A model generated the notes under the pieces. It was given only the letters and a program-made list of their open reading frames with translations, had not been told where the DNA came from and did not search any database. The translations under genes and the position numbers were made by a program. From positions 1 to 64,000 of IMG/VR virus record IMGVR_UViG_3300046787_000408: DNA of 64,000 nucleotides. The stretch is one strand, 5' to 3'. How positions within the stretch are numbered: the stretch's first letter is position 1; the number at the start of each line of letters is the position of its first letter. Below are positions 3 through 38,439 of this stretch, one piece after another.

Positions 3-3000
3 TGCAAACGGGTAAGCACTAGAATTCCACCACGATGCTTCAACAGGGCCACCATCGCCTGCGACCCATGACTTTTGGAAACTGGTGTCGTCATAACCGC
101 CCACTACGCTAACAAATGGACTTACCAAGTTACCTTCACTGTCTACTGGCAGTACAGTGGTCAACTCTGGACGAGCATATGCTGGTAATATATACGCACC
201 GTCGGGGTCAGCAACACGACCTGCTTCAAGGTCGTCCCATAGCACCAAGTTGTCGCTAGTATAAGGTCCTGGACCATACACAGTGTTCCACCAGGTGGGT
301 TTGATTGCAAAGCCCAGCATCTCCCATGGAGTCAACGCAGGGTTTTCTGTGTCGTAGAAGTATCGGTTAATGCCGCGCCAAGCACCCAACAAGTTGGTGT
401 TGTTGAGACGGTCAAAGCTTAGTTTGTTCTGACTACTGCTGTAGTTCCAAGAAAACTCATTACTTGGCAAATAGTTTTGCGAAGTGTAATCCAGTTTGTT
501 CCAGCCTACATAACTTAGGAAATCTGTACTCAACAAACTGTTGATGTCTGAATATGAATATCCTGTTTCACGGAAGTTGCCAGGCAACACATCTGTAATT
601 AACAACGGTACAGGATTTCCGTCCAGTTTCAAGTTGTTGTAGATGCGAGTTTCAAATTCCAGTAGCACCTGATCTCTTATGTCGTCAAACGCAGGAGTTT
701 GGCTACCATCGTGACCCACAATTACAACTGCGGTGCCTGTGGTAGTTTTGGTTTCTACAATTTCTGGACGGTATGCAGGATACAGACCTAGTTTGGTAGG
801 AGTGTTAGGCACAAAGTTGCCGTAGGTAACAGTGTATTCTTGAATGGTAACAACATCGCCCACGGCCAACGGTGTTAGTATGGTCACACGAGGACCGTCT
901 ACAGCCACAGTGTAATCAAAACCACGAGTCAACAACTGACTGTTTTTGTATACCAACAGGCCAAGATAGTTGGCAGAAGTATAGTTATAGATCTGCACAG
1001 TGTCAAACACATTGGTAGTGATTAGACCCACTGTGTAGGAGTTCTCAATGAACACCGATCCAGTTGGCAGCATGTCGCTCCAGTAAAACGGATTGATCTC
1101 AATTCTACCAGCTGTGAGGTTTTCCATGGCCTGTGTTAGAATTTGGCCAGGGGTTTCAAATCCAATGGTGAGTCTAGTAACTTCTTCCAGCATCAAATTC
1201 TTGAACTTTTGATATTCTCTAGAATTGTATTGCAGGCTGGCAAAAATGTTGTACTCTTGCGAGCGGTTAAAATAACCGGGCAATACCAGCGGTGCGCTTT
1301 GTTGCAAAATTACTTGACCATATGGGCCAATGTTGCCAAGATCTCGTGTGTTGTTGGCACCGTTGATTGGACCAGTTAATGTGGTCAAGTTCTCGCAAAT
1401 TGACTCATAGTGAGTACGAACAGTACCCAAGGTAAAGCTGTCACTGTTGCCGTTGATTGGGTTCTTTTCTAGGTTGATAGGAATCTGGTAAAACGCTACC
1501 TGACTAATTTGATCACTCAGTACCAACACTTCTACAATATCACCAATTGCATATGTGTTGTCCAATGCAATAGTGGTTGAGTTATCAAACACTTCAACTG
1601 TGTATGTTCCTGGATCTCGAAATGCTGATCCCACATACACTTGTACCGCAGGTATATTCACATTTGATGATTGTGCCTGCACGTCTAGTTTTAGTAGCTC
1701 GCCAGAGTAGGTAAATTTAAATTGTTGTCTTATTAATGTATCTGTGGCCGCAGTGTTCCATCCAATTTGTCGTTGGAATACTGCTCTGGAGTCATACTCT
1801 CTAACAAAGCCAATGCTGATGGACTCTGTAGTACTAACGTTGTCACGCACATACAAGAAGGTGTCTTTGTAGAGATTGTTCTCAAAAACAATGTCGCCCA
1901 CGTTGTTGAGGTTGAGATACTGCAACGGGAATTGCAACACAGGATCTAGTACACCAGTGTCACCTACAGCATAGCTGAACAATTTGCTGCCTGCAAATGT
2001 TGTACTTGGATATTTTGCAAGATTAGCAAAACTCACTCCATCAGCATCGTAGATGTTGAACAACGGTGCTTGTTGAACACCAGTTTTGAGTTGTGCTTCA
2101 GCCCATACAACACCGTCATACCAAAAAGATATTCCTTTGAGTGTGGTACCGTCAAGACAAACTGTGCTTTGATCAACTAGGACTTCACCGTCAGTGGCCA
2201 ATGTCAAATGAATCAAAGGTTGTTCCACATACGGAGCAATAGAATCTGGTGTAATAAAGTTTACTACCCAGATCTTGTTTCGTACGTTGACGTCAAGGTC
2301 AGCTGCAAAAATAACTCGAGAACCTTCAGTAAAGGTGTAGCCCCCGGTTGAATATCCAGTAGAGCCTTCAATGTTACTGAATGCATCTGTTTCTGTAAAG
2401 TCAATGATGTTAACTGGTTGCTTGCCTTCAGTTCCCATGTTGAACATACGCAGGCCAGGACGGAACTCAATGATTGGTCGTTTGGCGCGGTACGCATTGT
2501 CAATCACTGCTTCTGTATTGTTGTAAACTGCTGTGGCGTTGATAACATCAATGTGGAACCAGCGGTTGCTACGGCTCCAGGCATTAAGGTCCAAGGCAGC
2601 ACGATCAATGGTCAAGTAATCTAGTTCACCAGGTTCAGTAGCTTCAGTGCTACCATCCCCGTCAACTACGTAGGTTTCAGGAGTGATGTAGTTGGTAACT
2701 GGCAACAACTCTATAGCAGTGCCTACTCCACTTATGTAATATTCTTTGTTGATGTATTCAGCTGGCTCTACTTGGCCACGAAACACTACCTTGAGTCCGT
2801 TGGTAAACACTACTCCGTTAGGGCTTGTGTATGCTGGCTTGCCCAGCAGCTCGTCAATAAACAAAGTGTCACTTTGTGTTTGTTCAATCAGTCGAATACG
2901 ACCAAATATTTCTGGATCTGTACCGTCTTGGTAATACAGCGTATCTTGCGCTGCTGTCAACAAAGGTATTTCTCTAAAGAAACCTGCGTCATTTTTGTAC

Positions 3001-4490
3001 CATTGTGTGCTAGCATAGGTATTGCCATAACGCACAGTGAATTTTTCAAGATTGTTGATCAACTGAATGCTGTTCAGCGTCATGTACACATAGCCATCGT
3101 CGTTGACGTATTCAATTTGCCAAATACCAGAGCGTTGATCTAGCGGTACTTCGGTGGTTTCAGAATACAACAAGCTGTCATAACTGCCTGGTTGTCCGTT
3201 GAGAGAGTTGTCTCGATCCAAGGGATCATATACAGTTGTCTTGAACCAGCCGCCTAGGTCAGCGTCTAATGCAGGCTGAGTAAACACTATGGTACGGCCA
3301 TTGAGTTCAGTAATACCGTCAATACCACCGTAGGCTGCAATAAAATCAGCCACTGACACATTGTCCAACTGATCAAACTTGAGCTCAGTAAGCAGATCTA
3401 CTGTGCCAATACTAGGCAAACCGTAGTAAAAATCTTGTGCTGTCTTGGTTGGCACGTTGAATGTAATTGTGCCAAGGTCTTCACCGTTGTTGGTGACGCC
3501 ATATACATCTCTGCTGCTGATGTTGGGAGTGATTGGAACTTTACCGTTTACACCTGGGGCAGACTGAATCCAAAAGCCTGGGCCAGTACCAGCAGTGGCG
3601 TTGGCCACTGCGATGGTGCCTTGCATGTTGCTTTGTGTAGAACTAGCATAGAACAAAGTATCAGGAGCGTCTTGTGGTACTACAAATGTTACCTGTCCAA
3701 CAACTGCTCCGTTGTTGGTTACACCTGAGTTGTAAACGTTGCTCAAGCCTGTGGTTGGAGCTGTTTTGATATAGAATGGGTATGCACCATCTAGGTTCAT
3801 GGTAAACACGTAGGTATTACCGCGAACCAGCGTCAGCGTAGGATTGCTTTGTGAATCAATTACATAGCTACTGATGCCAGAATTGCTTACTCTGTAGTTG
3901 ACAGTTTCTTTGTTGTTTTGTGCAACTTCAAAAGTATAACTACCACCACGCACCAGGTCAATAGTGGGATTAGTTCCAGCCAGACCTGAGAATGAGTACA
4001 CGCCGTTTGCACGATCTACAACAAAGTCATCAGTGGCTGGAACTCCAGTTGCTGCTACATCTACTGATGCAGGGCCGCCGGGAATCCAAAAGTACTGACT
4101 AAAGTTGATGAAGGTATCCCAGTTGATAAAAGGATCCCAGGTGTAGTATTGACTCTCAAACAGTCGATCAGGACGGCTAGCATTGCCTCCCTGATAGGCT
4201 ATTGCATCCAGGATGCCTGGATATGTCATTACGTCGCGAACCTTGTTTGTATCAGGTTCCAGACTTACAACTCCAGCTTCTAACTGATAGTCAGCACGAG
4301 TTTTGTTGGGTTCTACCACATAACGGTCATTGGGGTTTACGCCGGGCCCTACACTGCGACCAATAAAGCCCTGAGTCTTTTTGAACTTGGGCTCCTGAAT
4401 CAGTTGATCCAACGTTGCAGCCAAAAACTGCTTGTTTACATCAGTCTGAAAGATTTCAGGTAAAAATTCTACACTACGTACTCTTGCCAT
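3..4490 (-). CDS. Very large baseplate/virion structural protein (gp7-like wedge position), 3' end beyond the left edge, >1496 aa
   Basis: Absent from the ORF track, consistent with no stop inside the window. ATG at 4490 overlaps the upstream TAA (TAATG) and reads MARVRSVEFLPEIFQTDVNKQFLAATLDQLIQEPKFKKTQGFIGR; the same frame reads ...EASWWNSSAYPFA at the edge. Follows the gp6-like gene. Confidence 0.8.
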   Translation of the reverse strand, partial: MARVRSVEFLPEIFQTDVNKQFLAATLDQLIQEPKFKKTQGFIGRSVGPGVNPNDRYVVEPNKTRADYQLEAGVVSLEPDTNKVRDVMTYPGILDAIAYQGGNASRPDRLFESQYYTWDPFINWDTFINFSQYFWIPGGPASVDVAATGVPATDDFVVDRANGVYSFSGLAGTNPTIDLVRGGSYTFEVAQNNKETVNYRVSNSGISSYVIDSQSNPTLTLVRGNTYVFTMNLDGAYPFYIKTAPTTGLSNVYNSGVTNNGAVVGQVTFVVPQDAPDTLFYASSTQSNMQGTIAVANATAGTGPGFWIQSAPGVNGKVPITPNISSRDVYGVTNNGEDLGTITFNVPTKTAQDFYYGLPSIGTVDLLTELKFDQLDNVSVADFIAAYGGIDGITELNGRTIVFTQPALDADLGGWFKTTVYDPLDRDNSLNGQPGSYDSLLYSETTEVPLDQRSGIWQIEYVNDDGYVYMTLNSIQLINNLEKFTVRYGNTYASTQWYKNDAGFFREIPLLTAAQDTLYYQDGTDPEIFGRIRLIEQTQSDTLFIDELLGKPAYTSPNGVVFTNGLKVVFRGQVEPAEYINKEYYISGVGTAIELLPVTNYITPETYVVDGDGSTEATEPGELDYLTIDRAALDLNAWSRSNRWFHIDVINATAVYNNTEAVIDNAYRAKRPIIEFRPGLRMFNMGTEGKQPVNIIDFTETDAFSNIEGSTGYSTGGYTFTEGSRVIFAADLDVNVRNKIWVVNFITPDSIAPYVEQPLIHLTLATDGEVLVDQSTVCLDGTTLKGISFWYDGVVWAEAQLKTGVQQAPLFNIYDADGVSFANLAKYPSTTFAGSKLFSYAVGDTGVLDPVLQFPLQYLNLNNVGDIVFENNLYKDTFLYVRDNVSTTESISIGFVREYDSRAVFQRQIGWNTAATDTLIRQQFKFTYSGELLKLDVQAQSSNVNIPAVQVYVGSAFRDPGTYTVEVFDNSTTIALDNTYAIGDIVEVLVLSDQISQVAFYQIPINLEKNPINGNSDSFTLGTVRTHYESICENLTTLTGPINGANNTRDLGNIGPYGQVILQQSAPLVLPGYFNRSQEYNIFASLQYNSREYQKFKNLMLEEVTRLTIGFETPGQILTQAMENLTAGRIEINPFYWSDMLPTGSVFIENSYTVGLITTNVFDTVQIYNYTSANYLGLLVYKNSQLLTRGFDYTVAVDGPRVTILTPLAVGDVVTIQEYTVTYGNFVPNTPTKLGLYPAYRPEIVETKTTTGTAVVIVGHDGSQTPAFDDIRDQVLLEFETRIYNNLKLDGNPVPLLITDVLPGNFRETGYSYSDINSLLSTDFLSYVGWNKLDYTSQNYLPSNEFSWNYSSSQNKLSFDRLNNTNLLGAWRGINRYFYDTENPALTPWEMLGFAIKPTWWNTVYGPGPYTSDNLVLWDDLEAGRVADPDGAYILPAYARPELTTVLPVDSEGNLVSPFVSVVGGYDDTSFQKSWVAGDGGPVEASWWNSSAYPFA

Positions 4491-7400
4491 TAAATTACTC
4501 CGCTACCAGGGGCTGTTCGGAGATTGGTGCTGGTCAAAGCCTCAATCACATCTATATTAGTTATGTCTGCTGCATTCACGAATATTTCGTTGGGAGTTGA
4601 ACGAATCTCGTACAAGTCGCCAAAACTCTTTTGTGGGTCCAGTGGTACTAGTACTACCGAACTGATAATGGTTCCCAACTGGCGGTGCAGGTACGCTGCC
4701 AATTCTGAGAAGTAAAAGGTGTCACCAAAGTTCCACTTGTCAATACTGAAGTAGGTGTTCATTTCTGCAATCACAGAGCTTTTGATTTCACTGGTACTGG
4801 CAGTAGACCCTTGAGCACGAATCACCTTGATGGTAGCTCGCAACTGTGGTGCTGCTTTGGCTCCAAACAAGGGCTTGAAGTTTACAGAATTCAACACCAC
4901 GTTGTCAGAGATCATTTTGTAATCCTGCAAGCCTTGGTATGCTGTGCTCAGTTCATCAATAGTAGGAACGCTAGGCTCAGTCACTGTGCCAGTAGTATCA
5001 CGAATCCAGTTTTGATATGCAGTATAGTAGGCTTGTGTGACCACATACAAATCAATAATGTTTGTAGTACCTGGATCAATACGAGTGGTCAGTGGTGAGT
5101 TGTGGCGATACTGAAAGTATAAATCTTGACGTCCAGTGCGTGCAATCCAGCCTGATTGTTCTACCAGCGTGCGAACACCAGCAACGTTGATGCTCAACAA
5201 GTAGAATGCGTCATCAGTGTATGCATAGAAAATTTGTCCAGGGCTCCATTCGCTCTTGACCAATTCAATGTCATCCAGAGTAGCGTAGTCACTGTTTACA
5301 ATACCTTCTTCAACCAAGAGATATCTTTGCAAGTTGTCAAAGTCCACAGTTTGTTGCAAGAACACCAGTTTCTGGTTGGAATTTACACCAGGGGCAACAA
5401 TTTCTTTAAAGAAGTCTGGGTTGTCTGGTACACCGTCGTTGTCGCTGTCACGGAAGCTGACCAAGACTTGGAAGTCGTCAACATAACCGTCTGACTCAAC
5501 TGGCTGACCAATAATGTCCATGACCACATCGCCTTCTAAAGGAGCTGAGTCGTCAGGTTGAGTATTCATGGCCAACACATTGATAAAGTCTTTGATAATC
5601 GTGCCAGTTCTGCTGTCATAGATCAACTGATCGCCGTAGAAGAAAAAGCGAGTCTGCAACACACTACCAAAGTAGTAGGCTAGGCCACGGAATGTCACAG
5701 TGTAGTTTTGATTTTCCACTACAAATTGTATCAGCCAACTTGCGTCACTGTTTGTGCCTGCTGTTGACCCTGCATTGGCATCGCTCCAGGCAGCATCTTG
5801 ATCCAAATTGGTACTGGTAATAATATACCAAGTGCCTGTTAGGTTGTTGTAGCCTAGACCAAAGTCACGGAACAACTCAATTTGGTCGCCCATTTGTTGT
5901 TCTAGCGACACTGGCAGGTCAGTTACAAATAGCGGAATAATTTCGCTGACCACTGCGCCTGTGGGCACAAAGTTGTTGACTGTGACTGGGCCTGCGCCTG
6001 AACTTAAATTGCCTAGGCCATTGTTGTATCCATCGCCTACAATGGCTTGTGGACTAGCCCAAATTTCTGTGCGTTCGTCAGGTCGGGTAGGTACGCCAGC
6101 TTGCAGTCGATTGTTACGATCAAAGTAATAAGGCTGTCCGTTAATAACTGGAGCCACAAACTTGATCAAGCTGCCAACTTGCACATACTTAAAATCAGTA
6201 CCGCTGCTGGGACCAACAGGAACAGCAGTGCCTGCAGAATTCTTGAAATAACCAGTAGTTTCGTTGGCCAAGGTAGTGGACTGTTGCCATGTACTTCCAG
6301 CAATGCTAACAAATGCAGTACCGGTTCCTGCTCCTACTCCTGTGGCCACAAATTCTGTGCCCACGGTGTTGTTTGCCGCACCAATAGCAGTAAAGTTGGT
6401 AGTGCCCACAGTGGCAATTACATACGGTTGCCCAATTACAAAGCTGCCTGCTGGTGCTGCATTGGTGTACACACGAGGGAAATTGTCGTAGTAGAACTGC
6501 TTCATTGTGGCTTCAGTCAATTGCGGTTGTACTGAGTTGGTCACAAAGTCTGCGATTTCGTTACGGTTGGTCCACCCAAACAAGATAGTGGGCAGTATGT
6601 TGTTTTCCCACAATGCGCCGTCGCTAGAGAAACTGTTGGTACTAGAATACTTGCCAGTGTTGTCCACTAGATCCAAATAACGGCTGGTACCAATCGATGC
6701 ACGGTTAAGCGCCTTGCTCTTGATAATACTGTTGTACTGAGTAAACGGAAACAAGTTGTAGTCTTCGCCGTTGACCATACGGTTTTGTGTATAGTATCTA
6801 GCAGGAGCACGTTGTTTGATTGCATCAATAGGTTCACGAGCCTGTGCATTAGTCACTGGTTGTGTAATACCACAAGTGAATGTAATTGTTTCAAGATTAC
6901 CGCTACGGCTGGTATAACTGATAGGGATACTCACGCTCTGCATTTCAGCAGGATTGATAATGTATTCCAAACCGTTTGAAGCACGAGTGTAGCATCGGAA
7001 AATACCCACTGGGATTTCGCTAAACACACCGTCACCAAATACCAAGGTAATTTGGTCATTGGTTCTACTGGTTGTGCTGTAGATTGGACGAAGTTCTACT
7101 TGTTGTTCTGCTGCGGCAGTGTAAACACTTTCCACATACTGCCACTCACGAGTGATGTTACCAACGTTGTCCAACTGGAATAGCCAACGATCTTCATTGT
7201 TAACACCTTCCACGTTGATGTTTACAGTGCGGTTGCTAATACGTTCACTCAAGTTGAAGTCCGTGTTGATCAAAGTTCCTTGTTTGAACGCAAAGAAATA
7301 GCCAGTGTTGGCGCTTTGAAAGCCCAGTTGATCATTGCGGAACAAGATGTTAAAGGGCGAATTTGCTGTTGGAGCAGGTTCGTACACATAGTCACGACCC

Positions 7401-18508: not shown

Positions 18509-19408
18509 ATGTCCTTAATCCCTAAACCTCCTGCCAAAGTAAACTATCTCAACAACCGAGATATCCTCAAAGAAATTCATCTCAGCAAAAATACCTACTG
18601 CTGGTATCGTGACAGAGACCTTGATCATCAATTTGATTTGATTCTGCCGTCAGTGGACAAGATCAATCAGCGCACTGTGGTAGAAGCACGTAAAAATCGT
18701 GCTGACCGTATCAAACGCGAAACAGGTGAAGTAATTGATCAAAAGAAAATTGCCAACACTGATCTAGTGTTTCGAATCACTGCTTGGGATCATATTCCCA
18801 AGGCACCCAAGAAAATAACCAAAGCCGAAGCCAAACGCAAAAAACTAGAAGACATCTTTGAACTAGAAGATGCTGTAACTGATGATCCATTGGCTGATCT
18901 TGTGGACGAACCTGTGCTGAACATGAACTATGTGCGACTGAATTTTCCGCCGTTTGAGCACTACAGACTAGACGAAGACAAGGTTCCTTTTATTGTGGGC
19001 CGCAGTCACTGGAAAGGCGATTTGGCCACAGGCGAGTTTTGTCGTGAACACGGTACTATGACTCGCAAGTTGGCCACTATGTTTATGAAACTGTGTGAGC
19101 GTTATGCCACACGCTCTAACTGGAGAGGATACACCTACAATGAAGAAATGCGTGGACAAGCCCTACTTCAACTATCACAGATTGGTCTTCAATTCGATGA
19201 GTCTAAGAGTCAGAATCCGTTTGCATACTATACGGCGGCTATTACAAACAGTTTTACACGTATCCTAAACATCGAAAAGAAAAATCAAAACATTCGCGAT
19301 GACATTTTGGAGATCAACGGTCTCAACCCATCATGGACACGCCAAAACTCCGGCAGCAAAAGCATGGCAGCTATGTCTGGTCCGGTTATTTCCAGCCTAG
19401 ATGAATAA
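18509..19408 (+). CDS. gp55: Late-transcription sigma factor, T4 gp55-like
   Basis: YLNNRDILKEI N-terminus; RSNWRGYTYNEEMRGQAL...FDESKSQNPFAYYTAAITNSFTRILNIEKK; directly upstream of gp47/gp46 as in T4-like phages. Confidence 0.9.
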   Translation: MSLIPKPPAKVNYLNNRDILKEIHLSKNTYCWYRDRDLDHQFDLILPSVDKINQRTVVEARKNRADRIKRETGEVIDQKKIANTDLVFRITAWDHIPKAPKKITKAEAKRKKLEDIFELEDAVTDDPLADLVDEPVLNMNYVRLNFPPFEHYRLDEDKVPFIVGRSHWKGDLATGEFCREHGTMTRKLATMFMKLCERYATRSNWRGYTYNEEMRGQALLQLSQIGLQFDESKSQNPFAYYTAAITNSFTRILNIEKKNQNIRDDILEINGLNPSWTRQNSGSKSMAAMSGPVISSLDE

Positions 19409-25126: not shown

Positions 25127-25555
25127 ATGACTTGGTTATATCAAAACACCCCAGTTGAGACATTACCCGAAGAGTGTATTGGATTTGTATACTTAATCAC
25201 CAATAATCTATCTGGACGCAAGTACATAGGCAAAAAACTAGCAAAATTTAGCAAGACCACTTACAAAACAGTCAAGCAAAAAAACGGCATCAAAAAGAAA
25301 AAGAAGGTTAGATCAAAAGTCGATTCAGACTGGCGCGACTACTATGGTAGCAGCGAGCATCTAACCGCAGACATCGCACAATTAGGCACCGAAAACTTTA
25401 CCAGAGAAATACTTTACTATTGCACATCAAAAGCGCAGTGTTCGTACATTGAAGCTCGCGAGCAGTTTGATCGTAAAGTATTAGAATCAACAGATTATTA
25501 CAACGGCCATATCTCGGTTAGAGTACATGGCTCACATATCATAAACAAAATTTAA
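25127..25555 (+). CDS. Single-domain GIY-YIG endonuclease (EndoII/Seg-like catalytic domain only)
   Basis: GFVYLITN...YIGKK, YYGSS, FTREIL, E, YYN; Lys-rich insertion; no C-terminal DNA-binding repeats. Confidence 0.85.
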   Translation: MTWLYQNTPVETLPEECIGFVYLITNNLSGRKYIGKKLAKFSKTTYKTVKQKNGIKKKKKVRSKVDSDWRDYYGSSEHLTADIAQLGTENFTREILYYCTSKAQCSYIEAREQFDRKVLESTDYYNGHISVRVHGSHIINKI

Positions 25556-26714: not shown

Positions 26715-27149
26715 TTACTCCAGTGGTCCCAGTAGTTCAAAGCCATCCATGCTTTGTTTGTACAGGTGTGCTTGTTCAAGATACAGGTATTGGAACCCGC
26801 GAGCCTTGTAGATAGCACACTCTGTTTGTAGTGTCTCTATCCCTAGCCGTAGCCGGGGATTGTTGTAGTTCCATGCGAATTGATCACACAGTGCATTCTT
26901 TTCGTCGTAGCGTCGGATCAAGCTGAACGCTGCTAGTTTGTCCCCGTCGTAATACCCTATTACGTCAGTCATTGGGTCTGTATAACGACTGTCAAATATA
27001 GGCATCACACTGGCAAAATGTTTGTATTTGCAGTAGTCTCTGTAGATGCTGTTCAGCTGAGTGATATTGGGTTCACGCAAGTACTCCCATTTTACCGTGG
27101 GTTTGTAGTTGGTTTTTGACAAATCAATACGTGCGAACTGGTAAGTCAT
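26715..27149 (-). CDS. Arginyl/leucyl-tRNA-protein transferase (ATE1/Bpt) C-terminal-domain-like GNAT protein
   Basis: IYRDYCKYKH...YYDGDKLAAFS...RLGIETLQTE...KARGFQYLYL...YK follows the ATE_C pattern (LY.RY...H; LG...L; G..YLYL; YK). Confidence 0.65.
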   Translation of the reverse strand: MTYQFARIDLSKTNYKPTVKWEYLREPNITQLNSIYRDYCKYKHFASVMPIFDSRYTDPMTDVIGYYDGDKLAAFSLIRRYDEKNALCDQFAWNYNNPRLRLGIETLQTECAIYKARGFQYLYLEQAHLYKQSMDGFELLGPLE

Positions 27150-27646
27150 CTAGGATCCTTTCTGTGGTGAAACAGCACTTTTAAGTAATCTTCTGGCCAA
27201 GTATCGTAGAATCCTTTGCGTGCCATACCTGCTGCTCGTTGATTAAGATCCTCAAGTGGCTGCACCAGAGCCAGTGCATATTTGCCTTGGTTCATTACAA
27301 TGCCATTGACTATTTCAGGATCTGCAGGATGATCTTCCAGCGCAATCAAGTCGTTGTGGTGCAAGAACTCTTGATTGGCTTGTTCAAGACTGCTAGAGAA
27401 CAATTCGTAATTCCATTCTGCAGGATCGTAGGCATATATTATTACTTCGTGCGAGCCCATGCCATGCTGACTGCGATGCTTTAGATCATAGTAAGGATCG
27501 GACCCTACAAAGATACCTATGGTGTTCTTGAGTCTTGCTGATCTTGCAAACGGGCATGGTGGCCATCCGCCTAGCGCAGGATGCGGCTTTTCCACAAAGT
27601 TTTCGCTCCATTCCAGGATGTCTCGGCGTAGTTGTTCTAGTTCCAT
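27146..27646 (-). CDS. DUF1415-like protein (CPFA motif)
   Basis: W..NFVE.P......PCPFAR and DHP motif; TAATG and ATGA coupling to its neighbours. Confidence 0.55.
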   Translation of the reverse strand: MELEQLRRDILEWSENFVEKPHPALGGWPPCPFARSARLKNTIGIFVGSDPYYDLKHRSQHGMGSHEVIIYAYDPAEWNYELFSSSLEQANQEFLHHNDLIALEDHPADPEIVNGIVMNQGKYALALVQPLEDLNQRAAGMARKGFYDTWPEDYLKVLFHHRKDPR

Positions 27647-27882
27647 TAAAAGAAAGGCAATTTGCTTGATTTAGTTGTTTCTAAGTTTTCCTTGATCAAT
27701 TCACTGATCAAGGTTCGTTCAGACGGACTCATTTGCATAACATCGTCATAGGTGGCGCCGCCTCGCATGTACCATGACATTTTCAAACTCTGCCTACGCA
27801 TTTCGTTGGCCTCCTGGTCCATCTGATCGATTAGTGCTGAAATTTCGTCAGCAGACGCTGTCAGGAGGCGGCTTCGAAAAAA
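27646..27882 (-). CDS. gp51-like assembly chaperone domain, probably expressed as a -1 frameshift extension of the upstream gene
   Basis: WYMRGGATYDDVMQMSPSERTLISELIKEN; frame open through the upstream gene's end; no clear RBS before the first ATG; slippery T TTT TTC at 27882-27876. Confidence 0.6.
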   Translation of the reverse strand, partial: FFRSRLLTASADEISALIDQMDQEANEMRRQSLKMSWYMRGGATYDDVMQMSPSERTLISELIKENLETTKSSKLPFF

Positions 27883-28703
27883 CTTGCTTGGTCCAGAGTC
27901 AAGGGTTGATCGTACTCGTGTTCGCAATTGTTGCATTTTAAGTGCAAGGGCTTGAGTTCACTAGCAGTGCGCAGTTCAATCACGTGATCGCGAATTACGT
28001 TGAACAGCTTACGATCACAGTTGTTCAAAAACTCTTGAATAAATTCAGGTTCAACCACAACAGTGTTGGGAGTTCTAATGCCAGCAATACTGTGCTTGAG
28101 TGCTTGTACAGTAAGCTCAGTAATTTTACGCAGAGCTTGATTCAACTTGGTTAGTTTTTCTTCGTCGGACAGATCGCTACCGGGAATCTGTTGAATGATT
28201 CGTTGTTCTTCAAATTGAGTTTGATTGGTGTCTGTTTGATTTTTGTAGGTAATGGGTCTGAAAAAGATCTCCATGTCCCCATGACGAATAGTTTTGCTAA
28301 AGTCAGGACTGTCCAGCTGTGCCAGTACAGTGCGCAGATCCAGTTGATATTCTTCATCAGTTTTACATGCAGGACACTGAGTGCTAAAACCCATTTCGTG
28401 CCCATAACTGGCAATACGAATGGCTACCAAAATAGCATTGATGTCCACAGCAGGAGCAGCCCAGGCATTGAGCACGTTGGGCAAACAGCTTTGGATCACA
28501 TTGATCACAGCTTGTCCGTTGAACAGTGCGTCTGGAGTACGGTACGTGATCTCGTCAATGGCTGTCATGGGCAGCACAGGTAGTTCTTTATTTTCAGGCA
28601 TGCTGATAGCATCCTGATGCCAGAATTCTCCACGAGTGGGCAGGGTCAAATAGATTGCCGGTTGTCTAAAGAATTGTCGCAATGGGTTAGCTAATTGGGT
28701 CAT
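27861..28703 (-). CDS. Baseplate hub/tail assembly chaperone, T4 gp26-like
   Basis: P.IYLTLP, LPMTAIDE, DINAILVAIRIASYG, two CxxC pairs (CPAC, CNNC), C-terminal SFF. Confidence 0.75.
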   Translation of the reverse strand: MTQLANPLRQFFRQPAIYLTLPTRGEFWHQDAISMPENKELPVLPMTAIDEITYRTPDALFNGQAVINVIQSCLPNVLNAWAAPAVDINAILVAIRIASYGHEMGFSTQCPACKTDEEYQLDLRTVLAQLDSPDFSKTIRHGDMEIFFRPITYKNQTDTNQTQFEEQRIIQQIPGSDLSDEEKLTKLNQALRKITELTVQALKHSIAGIRTPNTVVVEPEFIQEFLNNCDRKLFNVIRDHVIELRTASELKPLHLKCNNCEHEYDQPLTLDQASFFEAAS

Positions 28704-28709
28704 GAATCA

Positions 28710-28735
28710 CCTATAAATATATGTCTACTTATAGG
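28710..28735. promoter_or_regulatory. Overlapping divergent late promoters
   Basis: TATAAATA (+, 28712-28719) toward the tape measure gene and TATAAGTA (-, 28733-28726) toward gp26-like, within the inverted repeat CCTATAA...TTATAGG. Confidence 0.65.
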
Positions 28736-28744
28736 CGATAGACC

Positions 28745-31696
28745 ATGGCAGACATAAATCAGCAAACAGAAGAACTAGCAAGAATAATGGAACAGGTCAA
28801 CCGGGAAATGGCGTTATACGGCCAAATTACCAAGACCACCGCTGATCAAAAGCGTGATGCTGAGATTGAAGCAGCCACAGGCATGAAAAACTTCACCAAA
28901 GCTTCTGGATCAGCAGCTGATGCAGTGGGTCACTTGGCCAATGCTGGTATGGCTGCTGGTAAAGCCATGCTGGATGGCAAAAAAGGCGCAGCAGTATTCA
29001 ACGACAGTATTGACGGTATGGCCAAAGCTGCTCAGGCAGCAGGCGTTGCCTTGGCTCTGTTGATACCTGGCGGCCCTGCAATCAAGCTACTGATAGCTGG
29101 TATAACTGCGTTAACTGGTGCAGTAGCCGGCATGGTCAAGGCATCCAACGAGATGGCCGACAAGTTGTACAAGAGCTATTCAGGTCTATCCAAGTCAGGT
29201 GCAGCAGCAAGTGACGGCATGACCGGCGTGTACAATGACGCTAAAAAGCTGGGTCTCAGCATGAACGACCTGGACAGCTTGGTGGGGTTAGTAGGCGAAA
29301 ATGCCAAAGATCTTGCACTGTTTTCTGGGTCTGTGTTTGAAGGGCGCAAACAGTTTGCTGACATTGGTCAAGCAATGGAGCCTTACCGCAAGAGCTTGAT
29401 TGCTGCTGGTATGACTCAAGAGCAGATCAACGAAGGCACAATGCAGTACATTAGACTGCAAACTCGTGTGGGTCTAGCACAAAACAAAACAACTCAAGAA
29501 CTAGCAGACGGTGCCAAAAAGTACTTGCAAGAACAAGATGCGCTGACCAAGCTAACTGGGCAAACACGACAAGAGCAAGAAGCAGCACTAGAAGAAGCAC
29601 GAAGCCAAATGCGCTTTCGTGCCAAACTGGAAGAAATGCGCGGATCAGGCGATGAGAAACAAATTGCCGCAGCAGCTCAACTGGAAAAAACATATGTGTT
29701 GTTGAGAAGTCAGAGTAAAGAAGCAGCGCAAGGCTTCGGTGACATGACCACTGGCATGATAGGTACTGAAGCTTCGCAAAAGTTACTGATGAGTACCAAT
29801 GGAGAAGCACTACAAACTGCTAACCAAATGGTTGCTGGGCAAAAAGATGCTATAGCAGGAACACAGGCTATTGCAGCCGCAGCTGGTCAAACCACCAAAG
29901 ACATGAATATGCTGTACCAAACAGGTGCAGCAGAAAACTTTTTGCTCAGTATTGACGAGGGCGCTAAACTAGGCTTGTTGGCACAAAAAGATCTATCAGA
30001 ACAGTACGACAAGATTACAGCAGACCAGAAAAAGCAAGGTCAAGAAGGCGGTAAAGCAGCAGACGGCATCACAGACCAGTACGCTAAAAACATCAAGCAA
30101 CAGCAAGATCTCAACAAGAAAATGGAAGATGTTGTGTTCAAAGGTATTGACAATGCTCTTGTGATCACTAACAAATTGGGCAATGCTACTGACACGTTGG
30201 CCACAGGTTTTGAAACTCTAGGAAAAGCAGTAAACAAGCTTTTGAATATCTTTGGGTTAGGTACTAAAGAACCCAAGGTCCCAGCACCACCTACTAAAGA
30301 ACAAGAAGCTGCTGGTGCAGCAGTTACCGCAGCAAGAACTCAGTCAGAGCAAGCAGACAAAAAGTTAGCTGATCAAATGGCTGCAACTGAAGCGCTAAAA
30401 AAGGATTTAGAGAGTATCACTAAGTCCAGCAACAAATCAGCAGAAACCACAGCCAAAATTGCTGAACTCAAGAAGCAGATTGCAGAGTCAGAAAGCAAAG
30501 AACTGACTCTAAACAAAGAAGCAAAAATTGCTTCGTCGAAAAAATTAGAAGCAGCAGCAGCGCAAACCAATGCTAATCGTGCATCGCGAGGGCAAGCGTC
30601 AACAGCTACAGCAACTCCAACTGCTCCTGCTAGCGCAGGGGGTGGCGGAGCACCAGCAGGTGAAGCAACATCACGATCAATGGCGCCACGTTCTGGATCA
30701 CCGTCACCATCAGCTGGTGCCCCAGACGGCCAGCCAGGAAAAGGCGCGGCCGCAGGACAAGCACAAGGCGGAGGTAGTCTCAAAATAGGTCCAGCAGCAG
30801 ACATGTCTGGTCTTGACAATGAAATGATTTCAAGATTGGAAAAATTTGCACTATCAACTGGAAAATCCGTAGATGTAAACAGTGCTTTTAGATCTGATCA
30901 GAAACAGGCAGAACTCTGGGTAAGAGGCCACATACTTAATGAGCCAGGTGTACACATGCCTGCTGCTCCTAAAGATGATCAAGAAATAACCTACAAAGGT
31001 AAAACTTATCAAGTCAAGGGCTCAGGCAAAGGCAGTTTACATGGAGTTGGTAATGCAGTAGACATTAGTGTAGCAGGTATGGGAAAAAGCAAAGGCCCCA
31101 TTGACGAGCTATTGGCCAATGCTGGTTTGTTCCGTCCTTTCATTGCCAATGATCCTCCTCATGTGCAAATGATGGCAGAAGGCGGTATTGTACAGCCTAC
31201 TCCGGGAGGAACACCGGCTATTATTGGCGAAGGTGGCAATGCTGAAGCAGTTATTCCTCTCAAAGGCAACAGAATTCCTGTAGACTTCCCCGAAGAAGTC
31301 AAAAGATTTTTTCAATTTCAAGCTCAGGCTGACAATCTCAAATTCCTTAAAGGGGGCGACGAAAAATCCACCTATGAAGATGTTGATGCTGTGGTAGCTG
31401 CTAGTCAAGTCAAGATGTTTGCTAAACTAGAAGAAATAAAATTGGATTTAATAACCAAGGGTTTTGATCGGGAAATTTTAGAAAACTACGGAGAAGAAGG
31501 CAAATCAGCAGGAAACAAAACTGAAGCAGATGTAGCTGATCTACAGAGCAGATACAACGATGATGTAGTAGCAGAATCAATAAAAGAAAACGTAGTACAG
31601 ACCAAAACATTGATTGACATGATTTCAGAACTTGTGCGTGAGCAACGCAATGCCAATGACATCAGTACAAGGATCCTGCAAGTCAGTAGCAATTAA
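28745..31696 (+). CDS. Tape measure protein with a C-terminal M15/VanY-type peptidoglycan peptidase domain
   Basis: Long Ala/Gln/Lys helical region; NSAFRSDQKQAELW...SLHGVGNAVDI...DPPHVQ zinc-peptidase motifs; MAEGGIV...IIGEGGNAEAVIPL tape-measure motif. Confidence 0.8.
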   Translation: MADINQQTEELARIMEQVNREMALYGQITKTTADQKRDAEIEAATGMKNFTKASGSAADAVGHLANAGMAAGKAMLDGKKGAAVFNDSIDGMAKAAQAAGVALALLIPGGPAIKLLIAGITALTGAVAGMVKASNEMADKLYKSYSGLSKSGAAASDGMTGVYNDAKKLGLSMNDLDSLVGLVGENAKDLALFSGSVFEGRKQFADIGQAMEPYRKSLIAAGMTQEQINEGTMQYIRLQTRVGLAQNKTTQELADGAKKYLQEQDALTKLTGQTRQEQEAALEEARSQMRFRAKLEEMRGSGDEKQIAAAAQLEKTYVLLRSQSKEAAQGFGDMTTGMIGTEASQKLLMSTNGEALQTANQMVAGQKDAIAGTQAIAAAAGQTTKDMNMLYQTGAAENFLLSIDEGAKLGLLAQKDLSEQYDKITADQKKQGQEGGKAADGITDQYAKNIKQQQDLNKKMEDVVFKGIDNALVITNKLGNATDTLATGFETLGKAVNKLLNIFGLGTKEPKVPAPPTKEQEAAGAAVTAARTQSEQADKKLADQMAATEALKKDLESITKSSNKSAETTAKIAELKKQIAESESKELTLNKEAKIASSKKLEAAAAQTNANRASRGQASTATATPTAPASAGGGGAPAGEATSRSMAPRSGSPSPSAGAPDGQPGKGAAAGQAQGGGSLKIGPAADMSGLDNEMISRLEKFALSTGKSVDVNSAFRSDQKQAELWVRGHILNEPGVHMPAAPKDDQEITYKGKTYQVKGSGKGSLHGVGNAVDISVAGMGKSKGPIDELLANAGLFRPFIANDPPHVQMMAEGGIVQPTPGGTPAIIGEGGNAEAVIPLKGNRIPVDFPEEVKRFFQFQAQADNLKFLKGGDEKSTYEDVDAVVAASQVKMFAKLEEIKLDLITKGFDREILENYGEEGKSAGNKTEADVADLQSRYNDDVVAESIKENVVQTKTLIDMISELVREQRNANDISTRILQVSSN

Positions 31697-36401: not shown

Positions 36402-37598
36402 ATGTCAGAACAACTATTAGAAAGCCGCTGGGGCGAGACCAAAGAAGCATTGCTTGAAGGTCTGAACGGTACCAAGCGCAATAGCATGGGTGTTATCCTC
36501 GAAAACACTCGCAAGTACTTGAAGGAAAACGCTTCCGCAGGTTCCACCGCTGCCGGTAACATCGCTACACTTAACCGTGTGATTTTGCCTGTTATCCGTC
36601 GTGTAATGCCAACAGTTATCGCTAACGAGTTGGTAGGCGTTCAGCCCATGACTGGTCCAGTTGGTCAGATCCACACTCTACGTGTGCGTTATGCCCAAAG
36701 CTTGACAGACTCTTCTGCTGCTGCAACTAGCGTTACTGCTGGTCAAGAAGCATTGAGCCCGTTCACTATCGCTACTGCATATTCTACTGTGCCTAAAGAC
36801 ACAGCTACTGCTACTGGTTACACTGGTAACAACACAGCAGTTATGGAAGGTAACGGCGGTAAGCAAATTTCCGTGCAAATCTTGAAGCAGGCTGTTGAAG
36901 CCAAGACTCGCAAGTTGCAAGCACGTTGGACTTTTGAATCTGCACAAGATGCACAAGCTATGCATGGTATCGACGTTGAAGCCGAAATCATGGCAGCATT
37001 GGCTCAAGAAATTACAGCTGAAATTGACCAAGAGATTCTCTTGAGTCTACGCAGCTTGGCTTCTACTGAGTTCACATACAACCAAGCTACCGTATCTGGT
37101 ACTGCTACATTCGTTGGTGACGAACACGCTGCTTTGGCCGTGTTGATCAACCGTGTTGCTAACTTGATCGCCCAACGTACTCGTCGTGGCGCAGGTAACT
37201 ACGCTGTTGTTTCTAGCGCTGCATTGACAGTGTTGCAATCTGCAACTACTTCTGCATTTGCTCGTACTACAGAAGGTACATTTGAAGCTCCCACAAACAC
37301 CAAGTTTGTTGGTACACTGAACGGCGCAATGCGTGTGTTTGTTGATAGCTATGCTAGCGACACAACACCTGTGTTGGTTGGTTACAAAGGTTCGTCTGAA
37401 GCTGATGCTCCAGCGTTCTATTGCCCATACATCCCGTTGATGAGTTCTGGTGTTGTTCTTGACCCAACAACATTCGAACCAGTCGTGAGCTTCATGACAC
37501 GTTACGGGTACATAGAACTCACCAACACTGCATCAAGCTTCGGCAATGCGGGCGATTATGTCGGAGAAATTGCCGTGAGCAATTTGTCCTTCAGCTAA
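36402..37598 (+). CDS. gp23: Major capsid protein
   Basis: LVGVQPMTGPVGQI, VEAKTRKLQARWTFESAQD, EITAEIDQEI, FYCPYIPL, FMTRYG. Confidence 0.98.
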   Translation: MSEQLLESRWGETKEALLEGLNGTKRNSMGVILENTRKYLKENASAGSTAAGNIATLNRVILPVIRRVMPTVIANELVGVQPMTGPVGQIHTLRVRYAQSLTDSSAAATSVTAGQEALSPFTIATAYSTVPKDTATATGYTGNNTAVMEGNGGKQISVQILKQAVEAKTRKLQARWTFESAQDAQAMHGIDVEAEIMAALAQEITAEIDQEILLSLRSLASTEFTYNQATVSGTATFVGDEHAALAVLINRVANLIAQRTRRGAGNYAVVSSAALTVLQSATTSAFARTTEGTFEAPTNTKFVGTLNGAMRVFVDSYASDTTPVLVGYKGSSEADAPAFYCPYIPLMSSGVVLDPTTFEPVVSFMTRYGYIELTNTASSFGNAGDYVGEIAVSNLSFS

Positions 37599-37649: not shown

Positions 37650-37687
37650 TTGACTAAAACTTTATTTCGTGCTAACATACATAAATA
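37650..37687 (+). promoter_or_regulatory. Tandem sigma70 and late promoters for the HNH gene
   Basis: TTGACT-17 nt-TAACAT (with extended TG), then ATAAATA 5 nt before ATG 37693. Confidence 0.65.
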
Positions 37688-37692
37688 ACATT

Positions 37693-38439
37693 ATGAACAA
37701 ATACACTCGTTGGTACAACCAAATAGTCAAAAACGCTCAAACTCGTGTAACAGAAGGGTATGTTGAACGTCATCATATACAACCACGTAGTCTTGGCGGA
37801 GCAGATACACCAGACAATCTTGTTGAACTGACTGCACGTGAACATTTTGTTTGCCATTGGTTGTTGACCAAAATGACCACAGGTGAAGATAGATACAAAA
37901 TGCTAAATGCACTGCGAATGATGCGAGCAGAAAAAGAAGGTCAGCAACGTTATAACACTTCAATAACTAGCAGAGTATATGAAAGCATCAAACAAGAATA
38001 TGCAGAGCTACAGTCAATCTTGCGTTCTGGCGAAGGCAACGGATTCTACGGTAAAACACATACTGATGAAGCTAGGCGTAAGATAAGTGAAGCCAATAAA
38101 GGCCGTATCCAACCGCCTGAAGAAAAAGCAAAACAGATAACGGCTATCACTGGTCGAAAACGTGCTCCGTTTTCAGACGAGTGGCGTGCTAAAATGTCTG
38201 CTTCTAAATTAGGCGAAAACAACAATAGATATGGCGTTGAGCTCAGTGATAAAACCAAACAAAAAATACGAGAGAAAGCAACAGGCCGCAAACAGTCAGC
38301 AGAAACAATCCAAAAGAAAGCAGATGCTATTCGTGGAATCAAAAGAGAGAAAAAGCTGTGCCCTCACTGCGGCCAAATGATTGCTGTGAACACATTCTCC
38401 CGTTGGCACGGTACCAACTGTGTTGCCGTCAAAGTTTGA
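37693..38439 (+). CDS. Free-standing HNH homing endonuclease with NUMOD3-type repeats
   Basis: ERHHIQPRSLGGAD...NLVELTAREHFVCHWLL; FYGKTHTDEARRKISEA-type repeats; terminal CPHC. Start moved to ATG 37693, after the promoter. Confidence 0.9.
   Translation: MNKYTRWYNQIVKNAQTRVTEGYVERHHIQPRSLGGADTPDNLVELTAREHFVCHWLLTKMTTGEDRYKMLNALRMMRAEKEGQQRYNTSITSRVYESIKQEYAELQSILRSGEGNGFYGKTHTDEARRKISEANKGRIQPPEEKAKQITAITGRKRAPFSDEWRAKMSASKLGENNNRYGVELSDKTKQKIREKATGRKQSAETIQKKADAIRGIKREKKLCPHCGQMIAVNTFSRWHGTNCVAVKV

Follow-up and report, generated by a model that had tools for sequence, protein, structure and literature searches.

A gp26-type gene of a giant T4-like phage very probably yields a gp51-like long form by programmed -1 frameshifting

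Genes and features at the locus

We examined a gp26-type gene and its neighbors in a window of 64,000 nucleotides (positions 1 to 64,000 of the IMG/VR virus record IMGVR_UViG_3300046787_000408). The features of the locus are listed in table 1. Sequence, ORF list and translations confirmed the description given in an earlier note, which had claimed a -1 frameshift signal at the end of this gene, with one correction: the note saw no clear ribosome-binding site and ATG in the -1 frame, whereas two ATG codons are present, one of which is preceded by AGGAGG. However, neither of them is conserved in relatives. A DNA-level search of the phage collection with the locus found no match.

Table 1. Features of the gp26-type locus and other genes in the window.
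Position	Strand	Feature	Description
27861..28703	-	Zero-frame ORF	280 aa plus the TGA stop; gp26-type baseplate-hub assembly protein, the short product; ends AGT TTT TTC GAA GCC GCC TCC TGA
27876..27882	-	Slippery heptamer	T TTT TTC in X XXY YYZ register; Phe275 and Phe276 are the P- and A-site codons
27861..27863	-	Zero-frame stop	TGA, four codons after the heptamer, inside the 5' arm of the downstream helix
27646..27876	-	-1 frame extension	Reads FFRSRLLTASADEI... for 78 codons counted from the slip, 76 of them new residues (RSRLL...KLPFF), up to TAA at 27648-27646; long product 352 aa, junction TLDQASFF/RSRLL; gp51-like
27809..27869	-	Candidate frameshift-stimulating RNA fold	Closing helix GCCTCCTG (27869-27862) / CAGGAGGC (27816-27809), starting 7 nt after the heptamer and enclosing the hairpin TGCTGA (27853-27848) / TCAGCA (27840-27835)
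27936	-	ATG in the -1 frame	Gives a mechanical 96-aa ORF
27801-27799	-	Internal ATG in the -1 frame	Preceded by AGGAGG at a spacing of 8 nt (AGGAGG-N8-ATG at 27815-27799)
27146..27646	-	Next ORF	166 aa, function unknown (phrog_28122); its ATG overlaps the TAA of the -1 extension (TAATG)
28704..28744		Divergent intergenic region	41 nt; T4-late-promoter-like octamers TATAAATA on the + strand (28712-28719) and TATAAGTA on the - strand (28733-26)
28745..31696	+	Divergent ORF	983 aa; probable tape measure protein with a VanY/M15-like peptidase segment
31711-33477		Portal gene	PF07230, E 1e-103
18509-19405		gp55-type late sigma factor

The zero-frame protein belongs to the T4_baseplate family (PF12322; 52 bits against a cut-off of 24.5, E 1e-13), and is the only copy of this family in the 300-kb record. 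It also matched phrog_150 ("baseplate hub", E 1e-15). The AF2 model of the 280-aa protein (pLDDT 87, pTM 0.81) resembled BFVD entries named "baseplate hub assembly protein, T4-like", with TM reaching 0.9. On the other hand, a Foldseek search of PDB with this model gave no meaningful match (none at E<=0.001), and no PDB sequence relatives of gp26 or gp51 were found.

Conservation of the heptamer and the -1 frame

To investigate whether the heptamer is more than a chance match, we first analyzed a set of relatives from IMG/VR and GenBank. All 53 of them have T TTT TTY in register, 1–10 codons before the stop, followed by a -1 extension of 78–81 aa, and in several the -1 frame is closed 0–3 codons upstream of the slip. 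The same arrangement was observed in PA5oct, 121Q and XacN1, in 86 cyanophage or Aeh1-like loci, and in the isolates S-WAM1, S-RIM8 and Aeh1. We then scored 110 distinct homologous genes with a downstream -1 extension, which come from jumbo phages, cyanophages and Aeh1-like phages and are 17–94% identical. All 110 read NNT TTT TTY in the same register and carry a -1 extension of 60–81 aa, whereas only 3 other T TTT TTY occur in the 27,198 codons of these genes.

The conservation exceeds what the amino acids require. The codon before the two Phe codons is AGT, GCT, TCT, AAT, GAT or CAT, which encode five different amino acids but always end in T, although T represents 33% of third positions elsewhere. 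Similarly, the first Phe codon is TTT in 110 of 110 genes, against 55% elsewhere. The possibility that a homopolymer error in the metagenome assembly split a single gp51-like ORF, or that the heptamer and the open -1 frame are there by chance in a decayed gene, is effectively refuted: The same run of six or seven T, frame offset and nearby zero-frame stop occur in the 110 distinct sequences, including finished isolate genomes, and an independent assembly (a Logan contig) and a second lake sample reproduce the run of the window without any indel.

The T run also raises the question of whether RNA polymerase, rather than the ribosome, slips at this site, because a run of 6–7 T is present in every lineage. 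We consider this very unlikely, although no RNA data could be used to exclude it, as the one metatranscriptome run did not contain the locus. Efficient transcriptional slippage in bacteria probably needs runs of about 8–9 or more, and selection for a longer run would favor TTT as the second Phe codon, yet 106 of 110 genes keep TTC. In addition, a helix placed 5–7 nt downstream is the hallmark of ribosomal -1 frameshifting.

Such a helix starts at +5 to +7 in most lineages, with different and compensating sequences. It is strong in Atu_ph07, Phosso, XacN1, PA5oct, S-WAM1 and lineage L052, modest in the window and absent in a few lineages (L039, L091 and L145). MFE folding showed that the TGCTGA/TCAGCA hairpin, which had been pointed out in the earlier note, is the inner part of a larger fold. 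In the window itself, the helix of 8 bp at +7 is not significant on its own (P 0.11 against other positions and 0.065 against shuffles, MFE z = -2.0). In a further pairing test, 76% of cells pair, a value reached by 0 of 500 shuffles, whereas slid controls give 32–57%. RNAalifold found no consensus across clades, because the 3' arm sits at different columns in different clades, and no upstream element was identified.

An alternative explanation is that the downstream ORF is a separate gene, translated by internal initiation or by termination-reinitiation at the gp26 stop as a short "gp51" peptide, and that the heptamer is incidental. Some observations agree with this view. Cyanophage records annotate a short "baseplate hub assembly catalyst" ORF (Sullivan et al. 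2010, PMC3037559), an ATG overlaps the stop in Atu_ph07, Phosso and 121Q, where coupled initiation is possible, many cyanophages have ATG or TTG at extension codon 7, and the window has the AGGAGG-preceded ATG. However, 61 of 110 genes, including the clade of the window, have no ATG, GTG or TTG in the first 14 codons of the -1 frame, and the internal ATG of the window is I, L or V in relatives. Amino-acid conservation and codon periodicity start at the slip site, upstream of any Met, and codon periodicity and a synonymous excess in the -1 frame are already present in extension codons 8–22. S-RIM8 has CTT at codon 7, and its annotated ORF, which covers only the last 45 codons, starts 21 codons into the conserved region. 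Separate translation would also leave the synonymous constraint on NNT TTT TTY unexplained. Thus, we regard this explanation as unlikely.

Relationship between the extension and gp51

The extension is conserved in all jumbo relatives, with W37, R40, G41, G42 and R56 invariant, and its predicted structure is all-helical. Within phrog_150 (282 positions), T4 gp26 covers positions 14–235, T4 gp51 13–280, the ORF of the window 7–233 and its extension 256–280. Direct BLASTP of the extension against T4 gp51 was not significant, and single-sequence Pfam and PHROG scans gave only a weak hit to the phrog_150 tail. A fold search with the 78-aa extension model returned nothing significant except the Atu_ph07 fragment of the same ORF. 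The extension of the window matches gp51 only moderately (hhalign probabilities of 61% and 77.5%, HMM E 0.007–0.02).

The link becomes stronger, although indirect, through the cyanophages. An HMM of the cyanophage/Aeh1 extensions hit 77 of 92 gp51 proteins at E<1e-3, and an HMM of the gp51 C-terminus hit the -1 ORFs of all 88 cyanophage/Aeh1 loci in the test set. When virtual fusions were aligned, the cyanophage fusion was colinear with gp51 at a probability of 98.9%, the jumbo fusion with the cyanophage fusion at 98.3%, and the jumbo fusion with gp51 at 70%.

Gene copy number provides a natural control. Phages with two PF12322 genes (T4, KARL-1, KFS-EC and Aeromonas phage 25) have no heptamer at the gp26 end, where T4 reads GAG TTC TTT GAG. 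By contrast, six of seven single-copy phages checked (the window, PA5oct, 121Q, S-WAM1, S-RIM8 and Aeh1) have it. The exception is Pseudomonas phage Cygsa01, which has a TAATG-coupled short gp51 ORF and no heptamer, suggesting that the C-terminal module can probably work as a separate peptide. The earlier note was right that T4 genes 26 and 51 are annotated separately: In T4, gene 51 is a full-length paralog of gene 26 on the opposite strand, with 26 located before 25 and 51 before 27-28-29.

The -1 ORF downstream of gp26 was previously recognized in cyanophages and marine vibriophages as similar to the C-terminus of T4 gp51, but it was described as a reduced, independent gene of about 20% of normal length that is missing in Aeh1 (Sullivan et al. 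2010, PMC3037559), and no frameshift was proposed. We found that it is present, unannotated, in Aeh1. No report of a frameshift in gene 26 or 51 was found, although many subscription journals were not covered and novelty is therefore not proven. Reading this ORF as an extension of gp26 explains both oddities, and gives a corrected annotation for a core gene of some of the most abundant viruses in the ocean and of many jumbo phages. It also adds a large, deeply conserved family to the small set of bacterial and phage -1 frameshift sites, with natural variants such as different downstream helices, the TAATG-coupled version in Cygsa01 and the duplicated genes of T4.

Proposed frameshifting and the neighboring large gene

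Considering this comparative evidence, it is very probable, although no experiment shows the slip, that the gene makes two proteins by a programmed -1 ribosomal slip, as the earlier note had suggested. Most ribosomes would terminate at TGA and make the short form, whereas a fraction would pause with two tRNA-Phe on U UUU UUC, probably held by the downstream RNA fold. Both tRNAs would slip back one base onto UUU UUU, and translation would continue in the -1 frame. The short form corresponds to T4 gp26 and the long form probably to T4 gp51, which consists of a gp26-like body and a C-terminal helical module. One gene may thus supply both hub or tail assembly chaperones in a fixed ratio. [quoted passage not shown] The PA5oct homolog is not flagged as MS-detected, whereas its neighbor is.

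The earlier note inferred that the two forms act as a pair like lambda G/GT, which remains an inference. In G/GT-type systems, including those of HK97, Mu and P2 (E/E+E'), a -1 frameshift at a slippery heptamer near the 3' end of a short ORF appears to yield a short and a C-terminally extended product sharing the N-terminal body (Xu, Hendrix & Duda 2004; Christie 2002). The inference is strengthened by gene order: In S-WAM1, S-RIM8, Aeh1 and 86 IMG/VR loci, the extension ends at or just before the start of a large ORF on the same strand, which is tape-measure-like only by size, position and composition. However, the pair in the window is divergent from, although adjacent to, the candidate tape measure gene. 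The protein family (PF12322, 210–280 aa, with Cys pairs) is unrelated to the G/GT-type chaperones, and no TAC Pfam family matched the protein.

The location beside the tape measure gene claimed in the note is probable but not proven. The 983-aa ORF resembles tape measure proteins only by language-model features (its atlas neighbors are tape measure and VanY clusters, score 0.91), composition and synteny. It has weak colinear similarity to the syntenic proteins of PA5oct (found in the virion by MS) and Phosso. No PHROG matched, Pfam gave only two sub-threshold hits, including a weak VanY hit at aa 695–778, and pairwise similarities to T4 gp29 and to the cyanophage or Aeh1 large ORFs were insignificant. 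No T4_Tape_measure, PhageMin_Tail, TMP_3 or gp19 tube Pfam match was found in the genome.

A broader hypothesis, which we consider somewhat more likely than not, is that the frameshift in gene 26 is the ancestral and still dominant way of making "gp51" in the T4 superfamily, covering cyanophages, schizo-T-evens such as Aeh1 and Rak2/121Q/PA5oct/Atu_ph07-type jumbo phages, and that T4 and its close relatives replaced it by duplicating the gene and hard-wiring the long form. In this case, gp26 and gp51 would be the long-sought G/GT-equivalent tape-measure or hub chaperones of T4-type contractile tails, built on a fold unrelated to the lambda, P2 or Mu chaperones, which would represent a convergent use of recoding to set a chaperone ratio.

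In addition, the short region between the gp26-type gene and the divergent ORF carries octamers resembling T4 late promoters on both strands, and a gp55-type late sigma factor is encoded elsewhere in the window.

The probable frameshift locus and its genome

Examination of the minus strand of the locus confirmed the description in the earlier note, in which a gp26-like ORF ends with an in-register heptamer and is followed by an open -1 frame (see table of features). The 280-aa ORF ends AGT TTT TTC GAA GCC GCC TCC TGA, and T TTT TTC lies within it in X XXY YYZ register. Tandem slippage would give a 352-aa protein with junction TLDQASFF|RSRLL. The hairpin proposed in the note is also real, but it is the inner part of a larger predicted fold which begins 7 nt after the heptamer. 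On the other hand, the note's statement that the -1 frame has no clear RBS-ATG needs correction, because this frame does contain ATGs, one of which gives a mechanical 96-aa ORF, whereas another lies 8 nt after AGGAGG and is a possible internal start for a 51-aa peptide. Neither is conserved, and the codon at the latter position is I, L or V in most relatives.

Coordinates of features in the window and in the loci of related phages (handles beginning with L denote individual loci)
Sequence	Feature	Position	Strand	Remarks
Window	Whole locus	27646-28703	-	
Window	gp26-like ORF	ATG 28703 to TGA 27863-27861	-	280 aa
Window	Heptamer T TTT TTC	27882-27876	-	
Window	-1 frame, reading FFRSRLLTASADEISALIDQ...	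open to TAA 27648-27646	-	
Window	ATG in the -1 frame	27936	-	96-aa ORF
Window	Closing helix of the predicted fold	GCCTCCTG 27869-27862 / CAGGAGGC 27816-27809	-	
Window	Inner hairpin	TGCTGA 27853-27848 / TCAGCA 27840-27835	-	
Window	AGGAGG and following ATG	27799-27815 (ATG 27801-27799)	-	AGGAGG is part of the 3' arm of the predicted helix
Window	TAATG overlap of the -1 extension and the next ORF	27644-27648		
Window	Next ORF	27146-27646		166 aa; phrog_28122, function unknown
Window	Divergent intergenic region	28704-28744		41 nt
Window	Late-promoter-like octamer TATAAATA	28712-28719	+	25 nt before the ATG of the 983-aa ORF
Window	Late-promoter-like octamer TATAAGTA	28733-28726	-	22 nt before the gp26-like ATG
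Window	Divergent ORF, probable tape measure protein	28745-31696		983 aa
Window	Weak VanY / M15 peptidase match	30827-31078		Residues 695-778 of the 983-aa ORF
Window	gp55-type late sigma gene	18509-19405		
Window	Major head protein gene	36402-37595		
Window	Homing-endonuclease-like ORFs	37669-38436 and 25127-25552		phrog_655, phrog_7363/314
L057 (PA5oct)	-1 extension of the gp26 gene	4337-4567		No annotated gene
L061 (Aeh1)	-1 extension of the gp26 gene	3199-3381		No annotated gene
L149 (S-RIM8)	-1 ORF	1869-2069		Begins at AGT TTT TTC GGA TAG
L153 (Pseudomonas phage Cygsa01)	Short gp51-like ORF	995-1182		Starts at TAATG
L056 (T4)	26'	2803-3090		C-terminal 95 aa of gp26

The 280-aa protein matches Pfam PF12322 (T4_baseplate, E 1e-13) and phrog_150, which is annotated as baseplate hub. 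The window belongs to a roughly 300-kb IMG/VR viral record from a freshwater metagenome and carries several T4-type genes, including those for a gp55-like late sigma factor, gp46/47-like nuclease subunits, a gp5-like hub and lysozyme, a gp20 portal, a prohead protease, and a gp23-like major head protein. Two homing-endonuclease-like ORFs were also noted, the first of which lies directly after the major head protein gene, whereas the second also matches phrog_447. Using tblastn, we found that the closest cultured relatives are jumbo myoviruses at 28-33% identity: Atu_ph07, Phosso, PA5oct, the 121Q/PBECO4 group, XacN1, and Xoo-sp13.

The predicted downstream RNA fold and conservation of the heptamer

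To investigate whether the arrangement is conserved, we first searched with the 78-aa -1 peptide by tblastn. Atu_ph07, Phosso, and Xoo-sp13 were hit from the first residue of the peptide, in the -1 frame relative to their gp26-like genes. Their sequences read CAT TTT TTC GCA TGA, CAT TTT TTC GAA TGA, and GCT TTT TTT ATT..., respectively, all in register. Fifty IMG/VR loci with a complete gene end, whose gp26-like proteins are 36-94% identical to that of the window, all have T TTT TTC in register 1-4 codons before the stop, and all carry a 78-79-aa extension. In several of them the -1 frame is closed 0-3 codons upstream of the slip. The same is true of PA5oct (AGT TTT TTC AGA..., with the extension unannotated), 121Q, XacN1, the cyanophages S-WAM1 and S-RIM8, Aeromonas phage Aeh1, and 86 further IMG/VR loci. 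This conservation, together with independent contigs that show no indels, excludes an assembly error.

Comparative analysis of 110 distinct genes revealed that the conservation is at the nucleotide level. The codon before the two Phe codons is AGT, GCT, TCT, AAT, GAT, or CAT, which represents five different amino acids but always ends in T, whereas T accounts for 33% of third positions elsewhere in these genes. The first Phe codon is TTT in 110 of 110 genes, against 55% elsewhere, and the second is TTC in 106 and TTT in 4. Only 3 other T TTT TTY occur in 27,198 codons. Slippage of the RNA polymerase on the T run is an unlikely alternative, because the run is only 6 T and TTC is kept in 106 of the 110 genes, although this possibility has not been tested.

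Sixty-one of the 110 genes, including the whole clade of the window, have no ATG, GTG, or TTG in the first 14 codons of the -1 frame. In addition, in 39 distinct sequences of the window's group, column entropy by -1 codon position is 1.11 / 0.71 / 1.58 in extension codons 8-22, a stretch which lies directly after the zero-frame stop and before any common Met. Synonymous differences in this stretch number 2387 in the -1 frame, against 697 and 384 in the other two frames. The stretch is therefore very probably translated in the -1 frame, and in the window that would require shifting from the gp26 frame, although the occurrence and efficiency of slippage are inferred from sequence comparison alone. 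Thus, independent or coupled initiation is very unlikely for the window's clade on this comparative evidence, although it remains possible as an additional route where an ATG overlaps the stop.

Folding of the 95 nt after the heptamer places the first base of a long closing helix at +7 in most lineages. The arms differ between lineages and compensate.

Arms of the predicted closing helix by lineage (L-numbers are lineages designated only by their locus handle)
Lineage	5' arm	3' arm
Window	GCCTCCTG	CAGGAGGC
Atu_ph07	GGCTCTTTG	CAAAGAGCC
Phosso	GGCTCTTG	CAAGAGCC
L050	AGCTCTTAAC	GTTAAGAGCT
L052/L054	AGGCTTCTA	TAGAAGCCT
L035 (3' arm relocated)	CGCCTCT	AGAGGCG
S-WAM1	GCGTTAATGCA	TGCATTAATGC

We then tested each lineage separately against other positions and against dinucleotide shuffles. 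The helix is strong in some lineages (P<=0.02 in Atu_ph07, Phosso, Xoo-sp13, XacN1, PA5oct, L052, and S-WAM1), modest in the window (8 bp, P 0.11 and 0.065, MFE z = -2.0), and absent in a few (L039, L091, and L145). The fold is a plausible stimulator of frameshifting, but it is not established as such. On the codon alignment, the window's stem pairs in 76% of cells, a value which none of 500 shuffles reach, and slid controls give 32-57%. However, RNAalifold finds no alignment-wide consensus, because the 3' arm moves between clades.

Relationship of the long product to T4 gp51

In T4, genes 26 and 51 are separate and divergent, gene 26 preceding 25 and gene 51 preceding 27-28-29, and both proteins match PF12322 over their first ~200 residues. 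T4 also annotates 26', an in-frame internal start within gene 26, which is a third way in which this family produces nested products.

Coverage of phrog_150 (282 positions)
Protein	Positions covered
T4 gp26	14-235
T4 gp51	13-280
Window ORF	7-233
Window extension	256-280 (weak)

The cyanophage and Aeh1 extensions are clearly gp51-like. Their HMM hits 77 of 92 gp51 proteins at E<1e-3 (best 6e-9), and a gp51 C-terminal HMM hits the -1 ORFs of all 88 cyanophage/Aeh1 loci in the test set. For the window's clade the direct signal is moderate (hhalign 61% and 77.5%). Virtual fusion products align end to end through the junction: cyanophage fusion against gp51 at 98.9% (E 1e-17), jumbo fusion against cyanophage fusion at 98.3% (E 3e-14), and jumbo fusion against gp51 at 70%, with residues 50-341 on 32-248 of 249. 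The shared motif is M-x-P-x-E-R-x-h-h-x-x-L-I, close to the C-terminus.

The distribution of the heptamer provides a natural control. Genomes with two PF12322 genes (T4, Acinetobacter phage KARL-1, KFS-EC, and Aeromonas phage 25) have no in-register heptamer at the end of gene 26, and T4 reads GAG TTC TTT GAG TTA CTA TAA. Genomes with one PF12322 gene (the window's genome, PA5oct, 121Q, S-WAM1, S-RIM8, and Aeh1) have the heptamer. However, there is one exception, Pseudomonas phage Cygsa01, which has one copy and no heptamer (...AGC ATT TTC ACC TAA). Its short gp51-like ORF starts in the -1 frame and is apparently a translationally coupled, unfused version of the same module. The module can therefore apparently be delivered in three ways: by frameshift, by a coupled small ORF, or by a duplicated full-length gene. 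Where no start codon is available, the heptamer is always there.

It has been noted that gp51 of cyanophages and marine vibriophages is only about 20% of normal length and similar to the C-terminus of T4 gp51, and that gp51 is missing only in Aeh1 among T4-like phages; a frameshift was not proposed (Sullivan et al. 2010, PMC3037559). We found that Aeh1 has the extension, unannotated, and that the 45-aa protein annotated in S-RIM8 as baseplate hub assembly catalyst is the internal-Met portion of the -1 ORF, starting 21 codons into the conserved region. No report of frameshifting in gene 26 or 51 was found in full-text searches, although an earlier one cannot be excluded because many subscription journals were not covered. 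Both gp26 and gp51 are listed as hub assembly chaperones in a review of the T4 tail (PMC3004832), and a chaperone function of the two products is an inference here.

The divergent neighbor and known tail assembly chaperones

The divergent 983-aa ORF is followed by the portal gene. This synteny is shared with Phosso, PA5oct, and 121Q, where the counterpart is annotated as a virion structural protein and, in PA5oct, was detected by MS. Evidence that the ORF encodes a tape measure protein is limited. It contains a weak VanY/M15 segment (E 0.002), whose structural neighbors are M15/VanY domains, so a cell-wall hydrolase module may sit inside the protein. Its language-model neighbors are tape measure or VanY clusters (score 0.91), which is a lead only, and it has no Cys and a tape-measure-like composition. 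On the other hand, it does not match any tape measure Pfam family. We consider it a probable tape measure protein.

In cyanophages and Aeh1, the extension ends at (TAATG) or just before the start of a 600-1000-aa ORF on the same strand, which is the lambda G-GT-H order. In cyanophages this TAATG overlap joins the extension to the large tape-measure-like gene, whereas in the window the same overlap joins it to the 166-aa ORF. Interestingly, the intergenic region between the gp26-like gene and the 983-aa ORF carries back-to-back T4-late-promoter-like octamers, and the window also contains a gp55-type late sigma gene.

The AF2 model of the 280-aa protein is confident (pLDDT 87), and it matches only gp26-type viral models and no solved structure. 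The protein is therefore not a member of the known tail assembly chaperone families, but it resembles them in gene organization and inferred recoding logic. The extension is predicted to be all-helical.
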